In this document: in pieces, positions 5,290 to 64,000 of the stretch | How the letters are laid out: each line of letters begins with the position of its first letter | How positions within the stretch are numbered: the stretch's first letter is position 1 | Source of the DNA: Octopus bimaculoides | Lineage: Eukaryota | DNA length: 64,000 bases | NCBI RefSeq assembly: GCF_001194135.2 | Contig: NC_068981.1 | Span: 199,746,515-199,810,514 of the forward strand | Direction: 5' to 3' | The notes under the pieces: generated by a model | What the model was told of the DNA's origin: nothing | The model's database searches: none | Seen by the model: only the letters and a program-made list of their open reading frames with translations | Made by a program: the position numbers and the translations under genes

Positions 5290-5590
5290 TCGAGCGGGAT
5301 CGTTGCTGGTGCCCCTGGGCTGGCTCTTGTGCGGGTGACACATGAGGTTTCTCGAGCGAGATGAGCGTGGCCTTTGCCAGTACCGCCTGACTGGCCTTCG
5401 TGCGGGTGACACGTAAAAGCACCCACTACACTCTCTGAGTGGTTGGCGTTAGGAAGGGCATCCAGCTGTAGAAACTCTGCCAAATCAGACTGGAGCCTGG
5501 TGTTGCCATCCGGTTTCACCAGTCCTCAGTCAAATCGTCCAACCCATGCTAGCATGGAAAGCGGACGTTAAACGATGATGATGATGATGA
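5290..5590 (+). mobile_element. RTE LINE 3' UTR/tail (young subfamily) ending in (GAT)n
   Basis: ...ttaggaagggcatccagctgtagaaactctgcc...ccatgctagcatggaaagcggacgttaaacgatgatgat; the same tail follows the ORF2 stop at 23128-23130. Re-read after the gap at 5784-5970 (probable assembly overlap). Confidence 0.8.
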
Positions 5591-6214
5591 CATTGANNNN
5601 NNNNNNNNNNNNNNNNNNNNNNNNNNNNNNNNNNNNNNNNNNNNNNNNNNNNNNNNNNNNNNNNNNNNNNNNNNNNNNNNNNNNNNNNNNNNNNNNNNNN
5701 NNNNNNNNNNNNNNNNNNNNNNNNNNNNNNNNNNNNNNNNNNNNNNNNNNNNNNNNNNNNNNNNNNNNNNNNNNNNNNNNNNNGTGGGTGACACGTAAAA
5801 GCACTCACTACACTCTCTGAGTGGTTGGCGTTAGGAAGGGCATCCAGCTGTAGAAACTCTGCCAAATCAGACTGGAGCCTGGTGTTGCCATCCGGTTTCA
5901 CCAGTCCTCAGTCAAATCGTCCAACCCATGCTAGCATGGAAAGCGGACGTTAAACGATGATGATGATGATGACATTGACTAAAAACTTCTTTCATGAAGA
6001 CTTTTAGAAAGGTCCCCAGGTTGAGCAAGTTTTTTAGGATTTTTGCTCTCTCGCTGCCAAGCCAAGCTTATATTGTTTGCTCCCATCTATATAAGTCCCT
6101 GGTTGTTGGAAGAGCTTCCATTTCATAATGTATGAGCTTCTTACCTATTTTAAGCGCCACATGAGGCTGCCAGGGATGCAATGTTGCACAGCATCACATC
6201 CCTGAGTGCAAACA

Positions 6215-11308: not shown

Positions 11309-12030
11309 ATCATCATCATCATCATTTAACATCCACTTTCTATGCTGGCATGGGTTGGACGGTTTGACTGAGGTTTGGAAAGCCAGTGGCTGCACCAGGA
11401 TCCAGTCTGGTCTGGCAATGTTTCTACAGCTGGATGCCCTTCCTAACGCCAACCACTCTGAGAGTGTAGTAGGTGCTTTTTATGTGCCACCAGCACAGGG
11501 GCCAGTAAGGCAGTCCTGGCAGTGATCATGTTCAGATGGTGCATTTTATGTGCCACTGGCACAAGAGCCAGTCAGGTGGACCTGATATTGACCACGTTCG
11601 GATAGTGATTTTTACGTGCCATCAGCATGAGAGCCAGCCAGGGGGCACCTGCCCAAGCTACGATATTGGTTTTACTTGACTCAAATGGTCTTCTCAAGCA
11701 TATCATATCGCCCGATGCATCAGGAGTATTCTTAACAGGGCTGGACATGCGTGGCTGCAATCTCACTTTAGTTGCTTGGTCTTCTCAATCGTAACGTATC
11801 TCTAAAGGTCCCAGTCTCCTGTCATTGCCTCTGTGAGGCCCAATGTTCGAAGGTCATACTTCACCACCTCATCCCAAGTCTTCTTGGGTCTACCTCTTCT
11901 ACAGGTTCCTTCAACAGTTAGAGAGTGGCACTTCCTCACATAGCTGTCTTCATTCATACATAACACATCGCCATGCCAGCACAGTCGCCTCTCTTGCACA
12001 CCACATCTGATGCTTCTTATGCCCAACTTT
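11309..12030 (-). mobile_element. 5'-truncated RTE LINE (ORF2 C-terminus plus 3' UTR)
   Basis: ORF 11802-12026: GIRSIRCGVQERRLCWHGDVLCMNEDSYVRKCHSLTVEGTCRRGRPKKTWDEVVKYDLRTLGLTEAM, then UTR and (CAT)n at 11309. Confidence 0.85.
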
Positions 12031-12146: not shown

Positions 12147-12312
12147 CATCATCATCATCATCATCGTTTAACGTCCGCTTTCCATGCTAGCATGGGTTGG
12201 ACGATTTGACTGAGGACTGGTGAAACCGGATGGCAACACCAGGCTCCAGTCTGATTTGGCAGAGTTTCTACAGCTGGATGCCCTTCCTAACGCCAACCAC
12301 TCAGAGAGTGTA
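12147..12312 (-). mobile_element. RTE 3' tail, young subfamily, strongly 5'-truncated
   Basis: Identical by eye to the copies at 5425-5590 and 63768-63930. Confidence 0.85.
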
Positions 12313-14669: not shown

Positions 14670-16514
14670 TTATGTTTCACAATTGAAAAGTTTCACTCCA
14701 GTGTGTATTTGTTTGTGTGCTTTTAAGAGATTGTTAGTGATAAAAGATTTCCCACACAGATCACAATAATAAGGTCTTTCTCCAGTGTGGATTCTTTTAT
14801 GGACTAAAAGACTGCAATTGACAGAGAAAGATTTGCCACAAATGTCACAGTGAAATGGTTTTTCTCCAGTGTGGCTACGTATATGGATAACAAGACTTGA
14901 ATTATTAATGAAATATTTACCACATATCCCACAATGAAACAATTTCTCTCCACTGTGTATCCTTTTGTGACTGGTTAAATAGCTATTATCGACAAAAGAT
15001 TTACCACATATATCACAATGATATGGTTGTTCTCCAGTGTGTATCCGTGTATGTCTTTTTAATTTACTGTTAGAGACAAAAGACTTGTCACATATTCCAC
15101 AGTGATAAGGTTTTTCTCCTGTGTGACTTCGTATGTGAATAACAAGACTTGAATTTTGAATGAAAGATTTGCCACATATATCACAATAAAATGATTTTTC
15201 ACCAGTGTGGATTCTCTTGTGTTTCCTTAAATCACTGTTATAAACGAAAAATTTCCCACATATATCACAGTGGAAAGGTTTTATTCCAGTGTGTATTTCT
15301 TTGTGTCTGGCTAAATTACTGTCAGAGACTAAATACTTGCCACATATATCACAGTGAAATGGTTTTTCTCCAGTGTGACTTCGGATATGGATAATTAATT
15401 TTGCATTATTCATGAAGGATTTTCCACAGATTTCACAGTGGTATGGTTTCTCTCCACTGTGTAATCTTTTGTGTGTTGTTAAATAGCTGTTATCAACAAA
15501 ATACTTCCCACATATATCACACTGATACGGTTTCTCTCCAGTATGACTACGAATGTGTATAACAAGTTTTGAATTACTCATCAATGATTTCCCGCATATC
15601 TGACAGTGGTAGGTTTTCTCTCCAGTGTGGATTCTTCTGTGTTTTGCCAAACTACTATTATCAATAAAAGATTTCTCACATAACCCACAGTGATAGGGTC
15701 TTTCTCCAGTGTGGATTCTTTTGTGTTTTGTTAAATCACTTTTGCAAATAAAAGATTTTCCACATGTTTCACACTGAAACGGTTTCTCTCCAGTGTGGAT
15801 TCTCTTATGACTTGTTAAATAACTATTATCAAAAAAAGATTTGCCACATATATCACAGTGATAAGGTTTTTCTCCAGTGTGACTGCGTATATGGATGACA
15901 AGATTTGATTTATTAATAAAAGATTTCCCACAGATTTCACAACAGTATGGCCTTTCTCCAGTGTGGATTCTATTATGCCTTGACAAACTACTATTGTCGA
16001 CAAAAGATTTCCCACATATATCACAGTGATAAGGTTTCTCGCCAGTATGAATTCTTTTGTGTCTTGTTATTTTACTGAGTGAAACAAAACATTTCCCACA
16101 TACATCACAATGGTAGGATTTCTCTTCAGTGTGGATTCTCTTGTGTCTTCTTAACTTGCTGTTCGACACGTAAGACTTCCCACATACTTCACAGTGAAAT
16201 GGTTTTTCTCCAGCGTGGATTATTTTGTGACGTTTTAACTTATTGCAATTTACAAAATACTTCCCACAGATTTCACAGTTAAAGAGTTTTCCTTTGTCAT
16301 GTATTTCTTTGTGTGTAAAGACTTCCTCTTCTGAAGAAAATGTCTCCTTACAAATCTCACAGCAATATTCAGTTAAGTTTTTGTCTGGCGATGTTTGTTT
16401 AGTAAATGTTTCACTAGATAAAGATTTCTCACCACTGCATGTTTCTGTTACTGAATCGATATTGTTAAAAACAGGTGCGTTATTAAAAGTGTCCAAGGGA
16501 TTAACGTCTTCCAT
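14670..16514 (-). CDS. Poly-C2H2 zinc-finger protein, 614 aa, 20 fingers, MEDVNPL-leader subfamily (paralogue A)
   Basis: Uninterrupted ORF; about 50-aa leader, then 20 C-x2-C-x12-H-x3-H units with TGEKP-type linkers; an in-frame TAA 24 nt upstream of the ATG supports this start; no KRAB/BTB/SCAN domain recognisable. Confidence 0.95.
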
Positions 16515-16541
16515 ATTAAATTCTTTGAGAAGTCTTTAAAA

Positions 16542-16644
16542 CTGAGAAATGCCAATTAATATATGATAAGGTACAGCTTCTTGTTTCTGATAGGATTGCT
16601 TGCATGTGCAGAAAATAGGCAAAGCAGATATATTTTCTACTTAC
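16542..16644 (-). other. Predicted 5'UTR intron of paralogue A (103 nt)
   Basis: Donor ATG|GTAAGT (G at 16644) and acceptor TTTCTCAG| ending 27 nt before the ATG; the same -27 acceptor occurs in the other two paralogues. Confidence 0.5.
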
Positions 16645-17924: not shown

Positions 17925-18285
17925 CATCATCATCATCATCGTTTAACGTCCGCTTTCCATGCTAGCATGGGTTGGACGATTTGACTGAGGACTGGTGAAA
18001 CCAGATGGCTGCACCAGGCTCCAATCTGATTTCGCAAAGTTTCTACAGCTGGATGCCCTTCCTAACGCCAACCACTCCAAGAGTGTAGTGGGTGCTTTTA
18101 CGTGCCACTGGCACGAAGGCCAGTCAGGTAGTACTGGCAACGGCCACGCTCAAAATTGTGTATTTTATGTGCCACCTGCACAGGAGCCAGTTCGGCGGCA
18201 CTGGCAACGATCTCGCTCGAATGTCTTTACACGTGCCATCCGGCACAAGTGCCAGGAAGGCGATGCTGGGCACAGGTGCCATTGA
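17925..18285 (-). mobile_element. RTE 3' UTR/tail
   Basis: (CAT)n-cgtttaacgtccgctttccatgctagcatgg...; contains GCCAGT..ACTGGC subrepeats. Confidence 0.85.
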
Positions 18286-23802: not shown

Positions 23803-24445
23803 ACCATCTAAAACACAAAAGAATACACACTGGAGAGAAATCATATCACTGTGATATCTATGGGAAATTCTTTGTCAATAAGAGTGATTTGACTAGTCAC
23901 AGAAAAAAAAACAAAAAAAAACACAGTGGTGAAAAAGCCTATAATTGTAGATTGTGTGGTAAATCATTCTCTGATAATTGTTATCTTGATATCCACATGC
24001 GTAGCACCACAGGGGAAAAGCCATACCATTGTGAAACATGTGGAACATCATTCTCTGTAAACTGTAGTTTTGTTATCCACATGTGTAGCCACACTGAAGA
24101 AAAATCCTTCCATTGTGAAATGTGGAAAATTATTCACTGTAAATTCTTGTCTAGTGATTCATGAAAGAATCCACACTGAGAAAAAACCTTATCATTGTGA
24201 AATTTATGGAAAATCATTCTCTGATTATTCCAGTCTTGTAGTTCATCAAAGAGTACATACTGAAGAAAACCTCTATCAATGTAGAATCTGTGGTAAATCA
24301 TTCTCTGATAATTCAAATTTTGTAGTTCATAAAAGAATCCACACTGGAGAGAAACCCTGTCATTGTGAAATATGTTGAAAATTTGTTGTCTATAACACTC
24401 TCCTAAAAAGGCACAAAAAAATACACAATGGAGGGAAGTCTTAAA
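23803..24445 (+). pseudogene. C2H2 zinc-finger pseudogene (about 7 fingers; 5' part lost)
   Basis: Cys to Tyr changes (CDIY, CEIY), His loss (RSTT), an A-run insertion at about 23902-23921, a frameshift at tgtgaaatgtgg (about 24114-24125) and a stop at 24376-24378; fingers SVNCS, VNSCLV and SDYSSLVV match the paralogues. Confidence 0.85.
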
Positions 24446-28908: not shown

Positions 28909-29034
28909 ATCATTGACATGGACTATGAATATGAAACTAGTCCATGGTTTTAACTCTATGGAGTCAGCATTAAAGGTTGTGTAGTTGAGATTTCTGGCAC
29001 TTAAAAAGCACCATCGGATTGTGGTTGATGCCAG

Positions 29035-29935
29035 CTCCTCAGGCCCCTGTGCTGGTGGCATGTAAAAAGCACCCACTACATTTTCGGAGTGGTTGGCATT
29101 GGGAAGGGCATCCAGCTGTAAAAACTCTGCCAGATCAGATTGGGGCCTGGTGCAACCTTCTGGCTTCCCAGACCCCAGTCGAACCGTCCAACCCATGCCA
29201 GCATGGAAAATGGACGTTAAACGATGATGATGATGACACATTTAGAACAGCTATGGATATAGTCATCTAAATCAGATGAATAAGCAGGCTTCCAAGCTTC
29301 ATGTTTCAGATGATGCCATGAAGCAGTAATGCCATAAGTGGTGACATCCTCATAAATACCTTCTCCAGTGCTATTTTTCATCTATCTCACAGCAGTGTTG
29401 GAAGTTGCCTTTGAGGAAGTTCCAGGGGGAATTTACATCTAGATGCTGCATGATGTTGATCTCTTCAATGCTGCACAGTGTAAAGCCAAGACTGCACAAC
29501 AGTTCAGCTTAAAGATCAATATCAGAAAAGCTGAATGCCTTTACCAACCTCTGGAGAACCTAAATTACTATTGCACATGAAGGGCTGACCCCATGCAAAA
29601 CATTCGAATACCTAGGCAATACCATATCAGATAATGCACAAGTGGACCAGGAAATCATATACAGAATGAACAGAGCTAGTGCTTCATCTGACAGGCTGCA
29701 GGAGATGCTGTGGAAAAATAGGCATGTTTCTATATATGTCAAATGTAAGGTGTACCAGACTATGTTTCCTTTTCTGCTGTATGGAACTTGAAACCTGGAC
29801 AATTTATAAAGCACAAGTAGACAAATTACATGCATATATGATGAGACCGCTATAACCAATCATGAATATCACACTCTTTGCCAATATCAGGAATGAAGAG
29901 ATCCTCCACCCATGCTGGCCTGCCTCCTGCAATGG
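29035..29935 (+). mobile_element. RTE 3' tail (29035-29236) followed by a BovB-like RTE RT C-terminal fragment (about 29290-29935)
   Basis: Tail ends gatgatgatgac; the fragment reads FEYLGNTISDNAQVDQEIIYRMNRASAS..RLQEMLWKNRHVSIYVKCKVYQ. Confidence 0.7.
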
Positions 29936-30599: not shown

Positions 30600-30815
30600 T
30601 TGCCCTGCCAGTACCTCCTGACTGGCCTTCGTACCCGTGGCACGTAAAAGCATCCACTACACTCTCTGAGTGGTTGGTGTTAGGAAGGGCATCCAGCTGT
30701 AGAAACTCTGCCAAATCAGATTGGTGTAGCCATCTGGTTTCACCAGTCCTCAGTCAAATCGTCCAACCCATGCTAGCATGGAAAGTGGATGTTAAACGAC
30801 GATGATGATGATGAT
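30600..30815 (+). mobile_element. RTE 3' tail
   Basis: Same family as 5290-5590, ending (GAT)n. Confidence 0.8.
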
Positions 30816-33973: not shown

Positions 33974-35215
33974 TTAAGACTTTACTCTTGTGTGTATTCG
34001 TTCGTGTCTTTTTAAGAGACTGTTAGTGATGAAAGATTTCTCACATATTTTACAATGGTAAGGTTTTTTACCAGTGTGGATTCTTCTGTGAACTACAAGA
34101 TTAGAATCATCAGAGAATGATTTACCACATATTTCACAATGGAAAGGTTTTTCTCCAGTGTGGCAACGCATGTGGATAACAAGACTACAATTAACAGAGA
34201 ATGATTTACCACATATTTCACAATGGTATGGTTTTTCCCCAGTATGACTACGTATATGGATTTCAAGATTAGAATTATCAGAGAACGATTTCCCACATAT
34301 TTCACAATGGAAAGGTTTTTCTCCAGTATGTATTCTTTGGTGACTTGTCAAATCACTACTATTCACAAAAGATTTCTTGCATACTTCGCACTGGTAAGGT
34401 TTTTCCCCACTGTGTATCCTTTTGTGACTGGTTATATAGCTATTATCAACAAACGATTTTCCACATATATCACAGTGATATGGTTTCTCTCCAGTGTGTA
34501 TTCTTTTGTGTCTTGTTAAACTACTATTATTGATAAAGGATTTGCCACATATGTCACAGTGGAAGGGTTTTTCTCCGGTGTGACTACGTATGTGTACCAC
34601 AAGACTCGAATTATCAGAGAAGCATTTCTCGCATATTTCACAGTGGAAAGGTTTTTCTCCAGTGTGACAACGTATGTGGCTAACGAGACTTGAATTCTGA
34701 GTGAATGATTTACCACAGATTTCGCAATGATAAGGTTTTTCGCCAGTGTGAATTCTTTTGTGAACTACAAGATAGGAATTATCAGTGAATGATTTACCAC
34801 ATACATCACAATAACAGGGTTTTTCTCCAGTGTGAATGATTCTGTGTTTTTTAAGTTTAGAATTAACAGAGAATGTTTTCCCACATATTTCACAGTTGTA
34901 AGGTTTTTCTCCACTGTGGATTCTTTTGTGCGTTGTTAAGACACTGTAATAATCAAAAGATTTCCAACATATTTCACAACGATACAGTTTTCGCTTTTCG
35001 TGTATTTCTTTGTGTGTGAAAAATTCCTGTTCTGAAGAAAATGTTTTCTCACAAATCTCACAGCAATATTCAGGAACATTTCTGTTTGGCGATGTTTGTT
35101 TAGTAAATGTTTCACAAGATAAAGATTTCTCACCACTCTGTATTTCTGTTACTGAATCGATATTGTTAAAAACAGGTGCGTTATTAAAAGTGTCCAAGGG
35201 ATTAACGTCTTCCAT
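33974..35215 (-). CDS. Poly-C2H2 zinc-finger protein, 413 aa, 13 fingers, MEDVNPL-leader subfamily (paralogue B)
   Basis: Intact ORF; start placed at the MEDVNPL ATG (35215) by homology rather than the upstream TTG; candidate AATAAA on the minus strand at 33805-33810. Confidence 0.95.
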
Positions 35216-35242
35216 ATTAAATAATTTGAGAAGTCTTTCAAA

Positions 35243-35368
35243 CTGAGAAATTCCTGTCAATGTAGACTGCTACGATTCTGTTTACATGATAAAATGACGT
35301 TAATTAAGGCAGATGACGTAATTAAACTAATTGCAAAATAGCGGTGTCATTGATAATTTTTCCCTTAC
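35243..35368 (-). other. Predicted 5'UTR intron of paralogue B (126 nt)
   Basis: Donor GAG|GTAAGG (G at 35368), acceptor TTTCTCAG| 27 nt before the ATG. Confidence 0.55.
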
Positions 35369-35560
35369 CTCAAGGATACCGGTGACACATATTAAAAGTC
35401 CCCTAATGTAATTTAATACATTCAGATTCGGTCAATTATCGTAATTTATTCCGCCACTTGTATCCATCCATTGTAAATGAAATATTGACCAGCTAAATAA
35501 CTATGACATATCAACTGGAGAGTCAATACGACGTTGTTCGAACTGCTAGAAAGTGTGGCT
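35339..35560 (-). promoter_or_regulatory. Conserved upstream block of paralogue B
   Basis: ggggacttttaatatgtgtcaccggtatccttgag, and further upstream ctttctagcagttcg..ttgactctc, both aligning to 53765-53960 (+). Confidence 0.55.
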
Positions 35561-45064: not shown

Positions 45065-46657
45065 TCAGTCATGCAGCTTTTCTCCTCTATGAATATACTT
45101 GTGTTTAATTAAGTTACAATGTTCAGAAAATGGTTTCTTGCAGATCTCACGGGGATGTGGTTTCTTTCTTGTGTGAACGTATTTGTGTTTAGTTAAATTA
45201 TTGGATACAGAGAATGACTTACCACAACGATGTGGCTTCTCTCCTGTATGAATGCGTTTGTGAGAGGATAAACTGCTTGATTCTGTAAATGTTTTACCAC
45301 AAATATTGCAGCGATATGGTTTCTCTCCCGAATGAACACGTTTATGTTTAACTGCATCACCTTTTTCTCCTCTATGAATCCGTTTATGTCTAGATAAGAC
45401 ACTACTTCCAGAGAATGATTTACCACAAATATCACAATATGACTTCCCTCCTGTATGAATGCATTTATGAGTAGTTAAACGATTTAGCCGAGAAAAGGAT
45501 TCACCACACGTACCACAGTGATATGGTTTTTCTCTTGTATGAATATATTTGTGACTACTTAAGTTGCCCCGTGAAGAGAATGATTTATCACAGATATCAC
45601 AACGATATGGTTTTTCTCCTGTATGAATATATCTGTGATCGGTTAACTCACCACTTACAGAGAATGATTTACCACAAATATCACAATAATATGGTTTTTC
45701 TCCTGTATGAGTTCGTTCATGATTAGTTAAGATACTACGTTGTGAGAATGATTTACCACAGATATCACAATGATATGATTTATCAACTTCATGAACATGT
45801 TTGTGAGTAGACAAACTACTTCCTGTAGAGAATGATTTACCACAGATATCACAGTGATATGGTTTTTCTCCAGTATGAATATATCTGTGAGTTGTTAACA
45901 CACCACTTCCAGAGAATGATTTACCACAAATATCACATTGATATGGTTTTTCTCCTGTATGAGTTCGTTTGTGAATAGTTAAGTTACTACGTTGTGAGAA
46001 TGATTTACCACAGATATCACAATGATATGATTTATCTACATCATGAACATGTTTGTGAGTAGACAAACTACTTCCTGTAGAGAATGATTTACCACAGATA
46101 TTACAGTGATATGGTTTCTCTCCAGTATGAATGCGTTTGTGTGCAAGTACGCTATTTCTACGAGAGAATGACTTACCACAGATATCACAATGGTATGGCT
46201 TCTCTCCTGTATGGGTGCGTTTGTGAGAAGCTAAATTAGTTGCTACAGTAAATGATTTACCACAGATATTGCAGACATATGGCTTTTCTCCTGTATGGGA
46301 TCGTTTGTGAACAGTTAGGTAACTTGCTTGAGAAAATAACTTACCACAGATATCACAATCAAATGTCTTCTCTCCGTGAATTCGTTTGTGAGCAGTTAAG
46401 TTACTTTTTTGTGAGAAAGATTTAGAGCAGACATCACAGTGATAAGGCTTTTCTCCTCTATGAATGCATTTGTGAGCAGTTAAGTTGCTACTTTTAGAGA
46501 TTGATTCACCACAGATATCACAGTAAAATAGTTTTTCTCCTGTGTGAATACGTTTAGTAGTTAGATTACCTTTTATAGCAAATGACTTTTTACAGATATC
46601 AGTATTTGTAGACTGTGCTTTACATCTAATCTTGTTTTTGCTTAAATAATTTTCCAT
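45065..46657 (-). CDS. Poly-C2H2 zinc-finger protein, 530 aa, 15 intact plus 4 degenerate fingers, different subfamily (no MEDVNPL leader)
   Basis: Uninterrupted ORF; includes a 252-bp tandem 3-finger duplication; candidate upstream acceptor attatttcag| at 46960. Confidence 0.9.
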
Positions 46658-48098: not shown

Positions 48099-49203
48099 GG
48101 TACTATCCAAGAAGAGTGGTCCCGGTGCGCATCCGCGCTAGCTAGTCGTGACTAGTCGATCCTACGACTACCTAGCGCGAGTGCGCGTCATGCGCAAAAC
48201 ATGTCTGAGGGTTTTTTCTAAACAAAGTAAAAAAATTATACACTACCTGTTTTTGGTAAAGAGTCCATTAAAAAGTCGGGCACTATCATGCTATTAGCTG
48301 TCAGAAGTGAAAGTGCTCACTGCTAGTGAAGTATCTGTCTGTCTGCCTGCATGCCTGTCGATTCTTTGGCTACTGACAGCTAATACCATGACTGGCCGGA
48401 GCGAGCTATCTGTCTGTCTGTCTCTCTATCTATCTATCTATTTATCTATTACTCGAAAGTTCGCGCGTCCGCGCTAGCTAGTCGTGAGCTGAAAACACAA
48501 ATTTAATATAAAAACATATTTCCTGAAATTGCAAATTATTTAAAATATAAAAATATAATTTTCAACAGAGAGAATTTATCAAAATAGAAAACAAATGAAG
48601 TTTGAAGTTTAAAAATAATAGGATCGACCACTCACGACTAGCTAGCGCGGACGCGCGAACTTTCGAGTAATAGATAGAGAGAGATAGAGAGACAGACAGA
48701 CATATAGCTCGCTCCGGCCAGTCATGGTATTAGCTGTCAGTAGCCAAAGAATCAACAGGCAGATACTTCACTAGCAGTGAGCACTTTCACTTCTGACAGC
48801 TAATAGCATGATAGTGCCAAAAGTCGGTCTTTTAAAATCGACTGTTGTTCAATGGTATCAGTACAAGTAATTATCTTTTGCGTAACCCCTACCAAATTGG
48901 TGGACTTGGGCACATCGTAGAAATAGATGAATCTATGATGTGCAAATACAATGGAGGATGGGATAGAGGGGATAAAAATAGGTTTTTTAGTCTTTGTACC
49001 TGACCGTTCTTCTGAAACTCTTCTATCACTTATTAAAAAATTTATCAAACCAGGGACGACTATGTTCTGATCGTTGGGGTGCGTACAATGGGACTCTTTA
49101 CCAAAAACAGGTAGTGTATAATTTATTTACTTTGTTTAGAAAAAACCGTCATACATGTTTTATGCGAGTGCGTGCACCGGGACCACTCTTCTTGAAAAGT
49201 ACC
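48099..49203 (+). mobile_element. Internally deleted Merlin (IS1016/IS1595-like) DNA transposon with long TIRs
   Basis: Termini GGTACTATCCAAGAAGAGTGGTCCCGGTGC / GCACCGGGACCACTCTTCTTGAAAAGTACC; the interior 48841-49090 reads TVVQWYQY..YQIGGLGHIVEIDESMM.KYN / GG.DRG...FLVFVPDRSSETLLSLIKKFIKPGTT / SDRWGAYN (Merlin DDE motifs). No TSD found. Confidence 0.85.
48279..48818. mobile_element. Foldback MITE, Merlin-type (540 bp), nested in the Merlin relic
   Basis: GGCAC...GTGCC ends, arms of about 190-210 bp, AT-rich spacer, perfect 8-bp TSD AAAAGTCG (48271-48278 / 48819-48826). Confidence 0.9.
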
Positions 49204-50976: not shown

Positions 50977-51555
50977 AACAAACGAGATGAGGACAAATAT
51001 CTGTCAAATGGGCTTCATTGGCACGCAAACAACACTGGAAAATACGAAAACTAAAATAAGCAGCACATATGCTAGGACACAACAACCTCTTATTTTCTCT
51101 TATTCCTTTCTGTTGAAGAGCATATGTTCGAAACATAAATGCGTAAAACTAATACATTTGGTTGTTGTTCATACACCTGTCTTTGTCTTTTGTTTCTCTA
51201 TAAATTTCAACTACATACAAAAATACTCTGCTAAAGTTGTCGTATTTGTGTAATTCTAACCAATCAATGACGTGTAATTACTGCTGCTGTTTGCGAACAA
51301 CAACTTCCGGGTCCATTGAGAAAACGATGAATGTTCGACAACAAAAATTTGAATTGAAAATCTCCCCTAACAAAACCCTTCTTTAATAACCAAAGATGTT
51401 TTTATAGCAACATAGGTTTGCTGTATCAGGGTTGATTTGAGGCTAAATAACAACAGAATTATTTCTAAGACAGACCAACGACGGCGCCTTTATGTGGTTG
51501 CATGACCTGCGAGAAAAAGTAGCCAAACTCTTTTCATATACAGAATAGAAAAATC

Positions 51556-52131
51556 GGCACTATCATGCTATTAGTTGTCAGAAGTGAAAGTGCTCACTGC
51601 CTGCTAGTGAAGTATCTGCCTGTTGCTGGCCTGTCGATTCTTTGGCTACTGACAGCTAATACCATGACTGGCCGGAGCGAGCTATATGTCTGTCTGTCTG
51701 TCTGTCTCTCTATCTATCTATTTATCTATTACTCGAAAGTTCGCGCGTCCGCGCTAGCTAGTCGTGAGTAGAAAATACAAATTTAATATAAAAACATATT
51801 TCCTGAAATTGCAAATTATTTAAAATATAAAAATATAATTTTCAACAGAGAGAATTTATCAAAATAGAAAACAAATGAAGTTTGAAGTTTAAAAATAATA
51901 GGATCGACCACTCACGACTAGCTAGCGCGGACGCGCGAACTTTCGAGTAATAGATAGATAGATAGAGAGAGAGACAGACAGACAGACATATAGCTCGCTC
52001 CGGCCAGTCATGGTATTAGCTGTCAGTAGCCAAAGAATCGACAGGCCAGCAACAGGCATGCAGGCAGACAGACAGATACTTCACTAGCATTGAGCACTTT
52101 CACTTCTGACAGCTAATAGCATGATAGTGCC
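51556..52131. mobile_element. Second copy of the Merlin-type foldback MITE (576 bp)
   Basis: Same arms and near-identical spacer as 48279-48818; its own perfect 8-bp TSD GAAAAATC (51548-51555 / 52132-52139). Confidence 0.92.
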
Positions 52132-53764
52132 GAAAAATCTCTATCCTGTGATATACACGTAAGAGTCCATCATGTTTGGGAAGAAAGACGGAATGGTCAC
52201 AATTGGGATGTCTTTGATCATATCTGTTTAATCAGATCCAACTCGGGATTAAACGACAAGTGACGAAGGGAACGAGACGAGGCAACGAGAGAGCCTTTAC
52301 CTGGTCTCTCGAGTTGCTAGACGAAAAGACAAAAAGGAAAATGAAATTTCCGTCTTCAAAAAAAAAAAAAATGCAAGTTTATATTATTTTATAATGTTTG
52401 CTTAGGAATTCATTACTTCTAGAAAAGAATAAGACAAAATGGTCATGGCTGGAGCGCCTTTTCTCACAGATCCATTACAATCAGAGCTATCCTGTGGTTA
52501 AAACAATATTCTTCACTGAATGATGAAGCAGCTAAAGTTAAGAAAAGTTGAAAGAACAAAAGACAGCAAGTATCCATATTCCAAATATAAGGATTCCCTT
52601 GACTGGTGTAATTTATTCAGATTTTCGTATGAAATAAATAGAAAATGTTATGGGAACTCGGTACATATTATAGGTATAAAAACCTATGTAGCTATAGAAA
52701 CATCTCTGGTTATCAAAGAAAGGTTTTTGTCAGGGTTTTCTCAATGGACCTGGAAGTTGTTCGCAAACAGCAGCAGTAATTTTCTTCAGCTGAATACACG
52801 TCATTGATTGGTTAAAATTACTCAAATACGACAACTTTAACACGAAATAACTTCTAAAATACAAAATTTTGTCAAAAGCGTTAAGAGTAAATCCTGTTCT
52901 ATGTGATACATTCTACCGAAGTTTCAAAATGTTTAGTTAAAAAGAGTTAATTTAAAAATTTGGCCGTCAGATTGAAAAGATCCCAAGATTCTTCAGTGGT
53001 TGGCACGGCGTCAACTAATTTATACACGTGCAAAAATTGCAATTCGCAATGTTACCTTATTTGTTGTTTAACAGTAAGTTGACTTATGTTCTTTTACTTG
53101 TTATCTCCTTAATTCTTATTTACTTTTTTAATATCTCAACTTCCTGTCCATCACAAAATCGCAGACTACACCATACACGTGAACACAAAAACACAAAATT
53201 CACTTGTGAAGTTGTGAAAAACACTCGCCACCCTGCCTGACGAAGGTCACTTACTGCTAGTTCTCACTACGTACGCAATCATGTGCTGCCATTTGTTGGC
53301 GCGCTACAGAACTAGTTAGGGAAACTTTTTGATACTACCTCGTACATTCATTCACAAATGTTTATATATAGCCGTGTATATAAAGCCGATGACATAAATA
53401 TGTTAATGATCTTTATTTTATTTTTAGATCAAATAAATAATCTTTTATTACATATATAACACATATGTATATGATACAGAGATAGTACAAAAGAAAGATA
53501 AAGAAAAAGGAACACAAAACAAAAAGGGGGAGAAAGAATTGTAAATTCTCGATCTTTCGTGTGTGTTAATTCTTTTTTTATGTGGATTATTTGGAATGAA
53601 TAGTTAAGCCAAGTAAGTGATGTTGTTTGGTCTCAGTTTATCCCGATTGTGAAGTTTACGATGAAGAGAGTGGCAGCCGTTTTTTCTTTTTCTTTTGCAT
53701 TTTTAAAACTATAATGTATCTTTCCTATTATACGTCAACAGTTTTCTTTGTGGGGAAATTAGCT

Positions 53765-53960
53765 GCCCTTTCTAGCAGGTCGCCCAATTATGTTGACACT
53801 CTCACTAATACGTGTTACTTAAATGATTCGATTGAAGGAAGAATCTCATATAACTTCTATTATTTTGAATGCGTTAACGAATGCCTAAAATTGTGTTAGG
53901 GACTTTTACCATATGTCACCGGTGTCATTGAGATGGAGAAAATTTTCAATGACACCACTG
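53765..53960 (+). promoter_or_regulatory. Conserved upstream block of paralogue C
   Basis: tagggacttttaccatatgtcaccggtgtcattgag...tcaatgacaccact; 11-bp inverted repeat 53921-53931 / 53946-53956. Confidence 0.55.
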
Positions 53961-54094: not shown

Positions 54095-54121
54095 TTTTTG
54101 ATGCTTCCTAAATTATTTAAT

Positions 54122-55210
54122 ATGGAAGACGTTAATCCCTTGGACACTTTTAATAACGCACCTGTTTTCAACAATATCGATTCAGTAACAGAAATACACA
54201 GTGGTGAGAAATCTTTATCTTGTGAAACATTTACTAAACAAATATCACCAGACAGAAATATTCCTGAATATTGTTGTGAGGTTTGTAAGAAAACATTTTC
54301 TTCAGAACAGGAATTCTTTACACACAAAGAAATACACGACAGAGGAAAACCCTTCCACTGTGAAATATGTGGGAAAGCTTTTGATTATAATAGTTATTTA
54401 ACGAAGCACAAAAGAATCCACACTGGCGAAAAACCGTTTCACTGTGAAATATGCAGGAAATCTTTTGTTAGTAATTCGAATCTTCTTATACACAAACGTA
54501 GTCACAGTGGAGAAAAACCTTATCATTGTGATATATGTGGGAAATCATTTATGATAAACAGTTATTTAACAACACACAAAAGAATCCACACTGGAGAGAA
54601 ACCTTGCCGTTGCGAAATCTGTGGGAAATCTTTCTCTGATTATTCTAGTCTTATAGTTCACAAACGCAGTCACACTGGAGAAAAACCCTATCACTGTGAT
54701 GTATGTGGCAAATCGTTTGTCTCCAGCAGTAATTTAACTAAACATAAAATAATACACACTGGAGAAAAACCGTTTCACTGTGAAATATGTGGGAAATCTT
54801 TCACTCAGAATTCAAGTCTTGTAATTCACGTCCGTAGTCACACTGGAGAACAACCATATCACTGTGAAATTTGTGGGAAATCTTTTGGAAATAATCGTGA
54901 TTTAAAAAGTCATGAACGAATACATACTGGTGAAAAGCCGTACAATTGTGAAATATGCGGGAAATCATTTTCCGTTAATTCTTGTCTTGTGGTTCACAAA
55001 AGAATCCACACTGGAGAAAAACCTTATCGTTGTGATATATGTGGAAAATCGTTCTCTGATTATTCCAGTCTTGTAGTTCACAAAAGAATCCATACTGGTG
55101 AAAAGCCATATCAATGTGGAGTATGTGGTAAATCATTTATCACGAATGGTCACTTAAAAACACACACACAAATACACAGTGGTGAAAAGTCTTTTAACTG
55201 TGAAATGTAA
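54122..55210 (+). CDS. Poly-C2H2 zinc-finger protein, 362 aa, 11 fingers, MEDVNPL-leader subfamily (paralogue C)
   Basis: Intact ORF; an alternative in-frame ATG at 54101 would add 7 aa; candidate AATAAA at 55365-55370. Confidence 0.95.
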   Translation: MEDVNPLDTFNNAPVFNNIDSVTEIHSGEKSLSCETFTKQISPDRNIPEYCCEVCKKTFSSEQEFFTHKEIHDRGKPFHCEICGKAFDYNSYLTKHKRIHTGEKPFHCEICRKSFVSNSNLLIHKRSHSGEKPYHCDICGKSFMINSYLTTHKRIHTGEKPCRCEICGKSFSDYSSLIVHKRSHTGEKPYHCDVCGKSFVSSSNLTKHKIIHTGEKPFHCEICGKSFTQNSSLVIHVRSHTGEQPYHCEICGKSFGNNRDLKSHERIHTGEKPYNCEICGKSFSVNSCLVVHKRIHTGEKPYRCDICGKSFSDYSSLVVHKRIHTGEKPYQCGVCGKSFITNGHLKTHTQIHSGEKSFNCEM

Positions 55211-59519: not shown

Positions 59520-60330
59520 AAACTTTAGGCCAGCATCAGATGTGATGTGCAAGAGAGATGACTATGCAGGTATGGTCATATGTTGCGTATAGATGAGGGC
59601 AGCTGTGTGAAGAAGTTTCACACCCTAACTGGAGGGAACCTGTGGAAAAGGTAGACCCAGAAAGACCTAGGATGAGATGATGACTGGCTCCTGTGTTGGT
59701 GGCACATAAAAAGCACCCACTACACTCTTGGAGTGGTTGGCATTAGGAAGGGCATCCAGCTGTAGAAACATTGCCAAAATAGATTGGAGCCTGGTACAAC
59801 CTCTTGGCTTGCTAGTCCTCAGTTAAACCATCGAACCCATGCCAGGATGGAATGCAGACGTTAAATGATGATGATGAAAGATAGGTCTGGTGAGATTGTG
59901 GAACTGTTGGAGCGAAGATGAATGGTTGTGTACTGGAGGTAAGGTGAAAGGGATCTTCAACCAAACTCTACATGGGTAAGAAACAACAGTACAAATTCTT
60001 CTGGGTGAATAATAGTGATAGCAGGGATATGTTACTGTTAGCTGAGAGTTGGATAGAAAAAGCAGTCGAGGTAGTTAGGGTGTGTGATAAAATAATTAGG
60101 TTGGGACTACAGGCAATTCAATTGTCTTGGAATGTGCTCCATAGATGGGACTGCTAGAAGAACAGAAGGACTGTTTCTATATGGAACTCTTCTGCAGACT
60201 ACCTCAGGTAGCTTATTGTGGATGGTGACTTCAGTGGACATACTAGCCAGCATGTTGATGACTTCTGCTACATACATGGAGGCTATGATTCAGGATTGGG
60301 AAATGAAGAGGGTGTAAGGCCCATGGACTG
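59520..60330 (+). mobile_element. RTE LINE 3' end (59520-59880) followed by an APE-domain fragment of another copy
   Basis: QERRL..YGHMLRIDEGSCVKK..GTCGKGRPRKT; then YKFFWVN..D....LAESWIEK.VEV.RVCD.II and GDFSGH..QH...HGGY. Confidence 0.7.
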
Positions 60331-63767: not shown

Positions 63768-64000
63768 ATCATCATCATCATCGTTTAACGTCCGCTTTCC
63801 ATGCTAGCATGGGTTGGACGATTTGACTGAGGACTGGTGAAACCGGATGGCAACACCAGGCTCCAGTCTGATTTGGCAGAGTTTCTACAGCTGGATGCCC
63901 TTCCTAACGCCAACCACTCAGAGAGTGTAGTGGGTGCTTTTACGTGTCACCCGCACGAAAACGGCCACGCTCGAAATGGTGTCTTTTATGTGCCACCCGC
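63768..64000 (-). mobile_element. RTE 3' tail, young subfamily (continues past the window end)
   Basis: (ATC)n-gtttaacgtccgctttccatgctagcatgg..., identical to 12147-12312 over the shared length. Confidence 0.9.

Follow-up and report, generated by a model that had tools for sequence, protein, structure and literature searches.

Octopus has one of the largest expansions of C2H2 zinc-finger (ZNF) genes outside vertebrates, and to our knowledge no effector domain has been assigned to octopus C2H2 ZNFs. In a 64-kb stretch of the Octopus bimaculoides genome, called the window below, three neighboring ZNF genes, here designated A, B and C, start with nearly the same 73-nt segment, which we call the leader. 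What has kept so short a sequence almost unchanged at the head of genes that have otherwise diverged? An initial annotation of the window put forward either an undescribed lineage-specific effector motif or an element acting at the RNA or DNA level, with a possible link to A-to-I editing, and named gene conversion as the alternative. The explanation that we favor, with modest confidence and from sequence comparisons, is local gene conversion between tandem paralogues combined with purifying selection on a lineage-specific N-terminal peptide.

A nearly invariant leader in three tandem paralogues

Gene A (14670..16514, minus strand) is a single-exon open reading frame (ORF) of 614 amino acids with 20 C2H2 fingers. 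Gene B (33974..35215, minus strand) encodes 413 amino acids and 13 fingers, and gene C (54122..55210, plus strand), which is inverted relative to A and B, encodes 362 amino acids and 11 fingers. The finger numbers were obtained by a pattern search (C-x2-C-x12-H-x3-H, with TGEKP-type linkers) and confirm those given in the initial annotation. A and B are exact annotated products on CM046601.1 of O. bimaculoides assembly GCA_001194135.2, where they lie at about 199.75-199.79 Mb of a 199.87-Mb record, near a chromosome end; the window itself covers about 199.75-199.81 Mb of this chromosome. The cephalopod source assumed in the initial annotation is thereby borne out. Pfam scans identified zf-C2H2 and zf-H2C2_2 in the proteins, with E values down to 1e-155, as expected of C2H2 poly-ZNF proteins. 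The three genes are tandem paralogues and belong to a C2H2 zinc-finger subfamily of the Octopus lineage.

The leader comprises codons 1 to 24 and the first base of codon 25, and it occupies 16442..16514 (minus strand) in A, 35143..35215 (minus strand) in B and 54122..54194 (plus strand) in C. Its sequence, ATGGAAGACG...ACAGAAA, is identical in A and B at 73 of 73 bases, and C departs from it by a single synonymous change at base 48 (TTT>TTC, Phe). The near-invariance, its coordinates and the three CpGs inside the leader are thus as previously described. The exact A-B match runs over 80 nt (-7..+73, up to 16521 in A), the next longest exact match between these two genes being 29 nt. No fourth copy of the leader was found in the window, either by a fuzzy search allowing up to 12 substitutions or by tblastn. 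The sequences on both sides differ, as had also been reported for A and B: codons 25 to 72 of these genes differ by 11 residues and 19 nt, and the 27 nt upstream of the ATG differ at 3 (A-B), 8 (A-C) and 7 (B-C) sites.

All three genes have a polypyrimidine-AG acceptor (cattTCTCAG) 27 nt 5' of the ATG and a donor of the GTAAGT or GTAAGG type 100-130 nt further upstream, which suggests a short non-coding first exon followed by a short intron. In A, the intron predicted from consensus sequence spans 16542..16644 (minus strand; GTAAGT donor ... tttctcAG acceptor). The encoded proteins consist of the leader (residues 1-24), a linker (residues 25-49; 16368-16441 in A, 35069-35142 in B and 54195-54268 in C), a first finger termed finger 0 (residues 50-72), and then an ordinary finger array. 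Finger 0 of the three proteins (EYCCEICxKTFSSExExFTHKEIH) is canonical yet family specific.

The leader is the floor of a low-divergence block

Proportions of silent (pS) and replacement (pN) differences were calculated by the Nei-Gojobori method on codon-aligned segments. Among A, B and C, pS was 0-0.07 in the leader, 0.06-0.16 in the linker, 0.26-0.35 in finger 0, 0.42-0.47 in finger 1 and 0.50-0.62 over fingers 1-2. Third-position differences numbered 0-1 of 24 in the leader, 2-5 of 24 in codons 25-72 and 6-14 of 24 past codon 73. Reciprocal-best finger pairs, when pooled, gave pS values of 0.49-0.52, although the choice of pairs biases this figure toward similarity, and the last fingers of the three genes, which are positionally orthologous, were 74-77% identical. 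The flanks of B and C were 67-77% identical, whereas alignments of the A flanks with B or C did not surpass those of shuffled sequence.

Rather than an isolated island, the leader is thus the lowest part of a trough of reduced divergence, about 240 nt long, that extends from the acceptor region through finger 0. In A this block lies at 16299..16541 (minus strand) and takes in 27 nt of predicted 5' untranslated region (UTR), the leader, the linker (codons 25-49) and finger 0 (codons 50-72). From the divergence profile, it lies at 35000..35242 (minus strand) in B. In C it lies at 54095..54337 (plus strand), where similarity to B begins at about -11 and the 27-nt UTR is 26-30% diverged.

Relative to the finger arrays of the same genes (pS of about 0.5), some 7 of 14.3 silent sites of the leader would be expected to differ in each pair and only 0-1 do; by this standard, the silent-site identity of the leader is far beyond chance. 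Relative to codons 25-72, on a three-gene tree, 3.5-4.7 silent changes were expected and 1 was observed (Poisson P = 0.14-0.05), a deficit that is marginal and not significant. No replacement change was found in the leaders of A, B and C, whereas 8.4 were expected from codons 25-72 (P = 2e-4). As the replacement deficit is significant and the silent deficit is not, the extra conservation that sets the leader apart concerns mainly the protein. Similarity at silent sites belongs to the whole 5' block and not to the leader alone.

The linker is informative in this respect. It is 85-93% identical among the three genes, although it is unconstrained at the protein level across the family. Its pN among A, B and C (0.07-0.16) is about equal to its pS, and family-wide it is the segment that changes fastest at replacement sites (pN of 0.28-0.46). 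Selection on the protein is thus no explanation for this similarity, and the linker has the look of a neutral segment of recent origin. Over the block as a whole, pS was 0-0.35, compared with about 0.5 in the best-matched fingers, a drop of the kind that gene conversion would produce.

The order of relatedness among the three genes may also change along the block. In the 27-nt UTR the odd one out is C, and in +74..+216 it is A (odd-one-out counts for A/B/C of 2/1/6 and 13/5/4, respectively; few sites, with P = 0.015 by Fisher and P = 0.03 by chi-square), so that relative branch lengths switch across the leader. In addition, A lacks an upstream pair of sequences, GTCACCGGT...TCAATGACACC, which is kept in B, C and several relatives, yet it matches B from the acceptor onward. 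The block-wide fall in both silent and replacement divergence and this apparently mosaic branch pattern fit gene conversion and favor the alternative that the initial annotation had kept in reserve.

Relatives in Octopus have diverged leaders

We searched 1.84 billion representative proteins with a profile of residues 1-50. Seven proteins matched the whole N-terminal region, and all named sources were Octopus; the layout of leader, linker and special first finger is thus present in at least seven further ZNF proteins. The relatives are A0A0L8GTW0 and XP_052833736.1 of O. bimaculoides, XP_029645730.2 and XP_029652431.1 of O. sinensis, one UniParc entry, one protein from Logan assembly SRR11869391 and one from an ENA assembly. 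The profile matches start at residue 1, except for one at residue 107. Their leaders, such as MEGVNRLDASDNTVFNDVDSVTQT and MENVDRLNTSNTIVLNDTDTVRET, are diverged homologues of the leader of the trio, which has about 45-60% amino acid identity to distant members. A, B and C conform to the module pattern, that is ME[DNGH]V.., a linker of the form (G/D)E(K/E)xL..E(T/V)F(T/M)KQ and a finger of the form (E/D)YxCxxCxKxFSSEHE(V/L)FxHxxxH. Six DNA loci of relatives (L001-L005 and L007) have the same layout and a similar acceptor context, in which cattTCTcag is found again.

Codon comparisons were made with O. bimaculoides L005, O. sinensis L004 and L007, and Logan L001. The O. sinensis locus L007 carries two tandem copies, L007a and L007b, which are 10.8 kb apart. 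Between the trio and the relatives, nucleotide identity was 0.68-0.72 in the leader (pS 0.47-0.67, pN 0.21-0.26), 0.58-0.75 in the linker (pS 0.09-0.62, pN 0.28-0.42) and 0.70-0.83 in finger 0 (pS 0.09-0.75, pN 0.10-0.21). Over all comparisons outside the trio, the leader had a nucleotide identity of 0.61-0.73, a pS of 0.46-0.76 and a pN of 0.21-0.34, and the range of identity was the same, 0.61-0.73, among the relatives themselves. Even the leaders of L007a and L007b are 83% identical, with 6 of 22 residues different. The silent sites of the leader are near saturation in distant relatives, its three CpGs are lost in distant family members, and in none of the comparisons outside the trio were silent sites of the leader, in independent lineages, more conserved than neutral change would leave them. 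In other species and in distant paralogues, the leader thus diverges at both silent and replacement sites much like its flanks, the very behavior that the initial annotation had said would speak against its proposals, and these values argue against an element acting at the RNA or DNA level.

The segment best conserved across the family is finger 0 and not the leader; its pN was 0.10-0.26, compared with 0.17-0.52 for finger 1. The leader has a family-wide pN/pS of about 0.4 and near-invariant positions at M1, E2, V4, L7, V15 and V22. To judge by these codon patterns, the comparisons show moderate purifying selection on the leader peptide, and a modest role for it at the protein level is plausible.

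In comparisons with distant members, pN of the linker equaled or exceeded pS (for C versus L001, pS was 0.09 and pN 0.30), whereas pS was well above pN in the leader and the fingers. This excess could reflect diversifying selection, a mild constraint on nucleotides (GGTGAGAAA and GAAACATTTACTAAACAA recur) or small-sample noise.

Other searches returned little. A word-indexed protein search with the 72-residue N terminus gave no candidate, and the same kind of search with a 10-sequence alignment gave only three short Logan or ENA fragments. Exact-sequence look-ups of C, P0004 and P0006 retrieved no record, and A, B, C and the further ZNF ORF D described below are missing from the cluster collection. 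A metagenome scan with a degenerate leader pattern matched two bacterial contigs (53-54% GC), both by chance. Two gene models in the family look wrong. P0006 (UniParc UPI00071E07E3) contains two N-terminal modules that have 69 of 72 residues in common, each followed by diverged fingers, and appears to be two adjacent genes fused into one protein. P0014 (XP_052833736.1; L005 10001-21333) appears to read through the predicted acceptor, which adds 106 residues before MENVNHLD.

The N-terminal module

Pfam returned no family on residues 1-50 of A, B or C, even at E values up to 10, and full-length Pfam scans of the three proteins detected no KRAB, SCAN, BTB or ZAD domain N-terminal to the arrays, in keeping with the initial statement that the peptide belongs to none of these. 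AlphaFold2, run on the 10-sequence alignment, gave residues 1-48 a predicted local distance difference test (pLDDT) score of at most about 51, without secondary structure; only finger 0 was confident, residues 50-74 forming a beta-beta-alpha finger. The leader peptide is thus predicted to be disordered. The family-specific module has three parts, namely a predicted disordered acidic/hydrophobic leader that reads ME[DN]V[ND]xL[DE]...V[FL]N[DN]xD[ST]V[TR][EQ], a fast-evolving linker and an unusually conserved first finger, EYxCxxCxKxFSSEhExFxHkEIH. The suggestion of an undescribed lineage-specific effector motif stands insofar as this N-terminal region recurs in other Octopus ZNFs; an effector role for it is tentative.

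Two known short motifs were considered and rejected. The leader contains PLDTF, which resembles the CtBP-binding motif PxDLS, but P6 is not conserved in the family, and the leader does not fit the EH1 motif FxIxxIL. Residues 21-43 aligned weakly by hhalign to the end of a finger helix, the TGEKP linker and a hairpin whose CxxC has been lost (probability 8%, P = 0.004), and tblastn aligned the N-terminal region to HSGEKSFNCEM near the C terminus of C itself (55148-55204; E = 0.008). The leader and linker may be a decayed finger.

RNA-level and editing readings of the leader

The leader folds less stably than 198 of 200 dinucleotide shuffles (z = +1.78), and its 148-nt contexts gave z values between -0.04 and +1.59. 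In A and B, though not in C, the UTR pairs with codons 28-32 in a predicted helix of 12 bp. Duplexes of the leader with 4.5 kb of transcript-sense sequence around it (-1.5/+3 kb) were no better than those of shuffled leaders in all three genes, and Rfam gave no match in the window. A structured RNA or a local ADAR substrate is not supported by these predictions. An overlapping frame was discarded, as frame +2 meets a TAA inside the leader, and so was a hidden splice donor at the GGTGAG after the leader, whose GT is not kept in L005 or L004.

In cephalopods, the sequences that flank A-to-I recoding sites show suppressed synonymous change. If the leader were part of an ADAR substrate duplex, silent changes might have been suppressed around recoding sites, as the initial annotation had considered. 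Apart from this general knowledge and the fact that the organism is an octopus, nothing in our results points that way. The lack of structure in the leader, the absence of a nearby complementary partner better than the shuffled controls, the loss in C of the sole long-range helix and the divergence of the leader in other family members all argue against an editing constraint, which we consider very improbable.

Exchange, selection or both

The favored combination of conversion and selection would work as follows. The 5' end of the coding exon (from about -27/-11 to +216) would have a much younger common ancestry than the finger arrays and flanks, most likely through ectopic gene conversion or another non-allelic exchange among neighboring copies, which would lower silent, replacement and UTR divergence alike. 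Within the block, the leader would additionally be under purifying selection or would form the core of the latest A-B conversion tract (-7..+73); either way, replacement changes of the kind gathered by the adjoining linker would have been removed from it. The divergence profile, the diverged leaders of the wider family and the lack of RNA structure are observations; that conversion made the block young, and that the peptide has a function, we infer. The two nearly identical modules of P0006, each ahead of diverged fingers, are a parallel case that favors recent exchange. Several points weigh against this account. The 3' step in divergence falls at about codon 72-75 in all three pairs and the 5' edges are alike (-7 for A-B and -11 for B-C), and since random tracts should not share their ends in this way, the account needs selection or tracts limited by homology. 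The leader has one polymorphic site, so a GENECONV-type test is powerless, and the mosaic pattern is drawn from a small number of sites (P = 0.015-0.03). Neither the protein index nor the metagenome scan yielded an orthologue of A, B or C in another species, and the evidence is thus a comparison of paralogues. Finally, tandem position need not homogenize genes, as illustrated by the diverged L007a/b pair.

Shared edges are what one would expect of selection acting without conversion, in which case the leader, and more weakly the whole block, would be under purifying selection on both peptide and nucleotides. The nucleotides might serve as an unstructured translation-initiation region, as an exonic enhancer or a transcription-factor site immediately 3' of the promoter, or as an exonic splicing signal by the acceptor. 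The edges of the trough are the same in all three pairs (about -7/-11 and +73/+78), the leader has diverged significantly less than the block next to it (0 A-B differences versus 9.7 expected), its unusual lack of structure is expected of start-proximal mRNA, and the identical run takes in the Kozak-proximal TTTAAT. Against such an origin, the silent sites of the leader are saturated relative to every more distant member and its CpGs are not retained there, the silent deficit relative to the local background is marginal, and it is left unexplained why divergence in the neutral-looking linker and in the A-B UTR is 3-5 times lower than in the fingers and flanks. We regard selection by itself as unlikely. 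Slightly less likely still is the converse, conversion by itself, in which the leader would be the latest short tract, of about 80 nt for A-B, within a region converted earlier and the peptide would have no special constraint. It would agree with the inclusion of 7 non-coding bases in the 80-nt exact A-B run, with the barely different B-C divergence of the leader (1 of 73) and of the next 48 nt (1 of 48), and with the predicted disorder of residues 1-48. The leader of C, though, has a single change next to a UTR that is 26-30% diverged, which would take two or more tracts with almost identical edges, and the family-wide pN/pS of the leader with its near-invariant positions implies some constraint on the peptide.

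The near-identity of the leaders is therefore probably an ordinary feature of a tandem family, brought about by local sequence exchange together with purifying selection. A nucleotide-level element would have been more surprising, but our results do not support one. The remaining point of interest is whether octopus ZNFs have in this module a genuine effector domain. It is conceivable, though we hold this only tentatively, that the module of about 72 residues is an octopod-specific ZNF effector module with a role like that of KRAB, ZAD or FiNZ, in which the leader motif recruits a cofactor and its invariance reflects function and not only recent conversion. An N-terminal module common to a subfamily in at least two Octopus species provides a concrete handle on how these factors act.

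Other features of the window

The upstream sequence pair mentioned above is a bipartite motif in which GTCACCGGT is followed 20-30 nt later by TCAATGACACC, 110-210 nt 5' of the ATG. It occurs at 35343-35386 (minus strand) upstream of B and 53915-53956 (plus strand) upstream of C, as well as in several distant members from other samples or species (L007 20661-20669, L002 181-189, L001 1454-1462 and L003 at about 159-200); none was found in A, L004, L005 or L007a. No occurrence is expected by chance in the window. Across the family its conservation exceeds that of the leader, and it may belong to a promoter or a first exon.

The finger arrays show a higher-order periodicity over the 84-nt unit, of 252 nt in A (14742-16279), B (34030-34930) and D (45395-46550) and of 168/336 nt in C (54342-55138), which indicates that the arrays probably grew via duplication of blocks of 2-4 fingers. 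D is a fourth ZNF ORF (45065-46657, minus strand; 530 amino acids) that belongs to another subfamily, is devoid of the N-terminal module and has several irregular fingers. A finger-repeat fragment without an ORF at 23810-24440 (plus strand) is probably a pseudogene.

The window also contains an interspersed repeat of about 160-300 nt. Four copies (12149-12312, 5427-5590, 5809-5972 and 63768-63929) are 100% identical over 162-164 nt and many others are 75-95% identical, with further copies at 17925-18221, 11309-11637, 30606-30814, 28995-29236 and 59681-59877. The repeat is found in O. sinensis L004 at 91-93% identity and has no Rfam match; it looks like a recently active SINE-like element. An element of about 580 nt (51554-52133) matches its own reverse complement at 79%, as a foldback or palindromic sequence, and a second copy, 89.5% identical, lies 3 kb away at 48271-48822.

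Comparison with known systems

A survey of C2H2 expansion in cephalopods (PMC12513265) does not use the words N-terminal, motif, effector or gene conversion, and our literature searches returned no description of the octopus N-terminal module and, as in Pfam, no effector domain for octopus ZNFs. The module appears undescribed so far. It is nevertheless of a familiar type, that of lineage-specific N-terminal regions in tandem ZNF families with concerted evolution. Like KRAB, SCAN, BTB and ZAD, it precedes the C2H2 array of tandemly expanded genes and has been conserved better than the fast-changing fingers; unlike them, it is far shorter, predicted to be disordered and located in the same exon as the fingers.

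As regards exchange, short converted regions were detected with GENECONV in many sequence sets of paralogous poly-ZF genes (Emerson & Thomas 2009, PMC2604467). The octopus block of about 240 nt is similar in that its divergence is 3-8 times lower than elsewhere in the gene. It differs in that it is limited to the non-array 5' end and has edges common to three copies, and conversion is deduced here from divergence profiles. Finger 0, for its part, recalls the dimerization fingers of the IMZF type (PMC12774644), as it is a conserved, family-specific first finger that evolves unlike the DNA-reading array; yet it is joined to that array by a normal 7-residue linker instead of lying at least 100 residues away, and it has neither the CGx-Phi motif nor a predicted extra beta-strand.

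The closest analogue in concept is FiNZ, a glutamate-rich, lineage-restricted N-terminal domain of 28 residues in cyprinid ZNFs that is unlike known domains (Wells et al., bioRxiv 10.1101/2022.11.29.518450). Both FiNZ and the octopus region (about 24-50 residues) are short, acidic, lineage restricted and dissimilar to known domains, and both head a massively expanded, clustered poly-ZNF family. To go by the published description of FiNZ, on which this comparison is based, the two differ in taxon and in degree of conservation, FiNZ being highly conserved across its family and the octopus leader moderately so.

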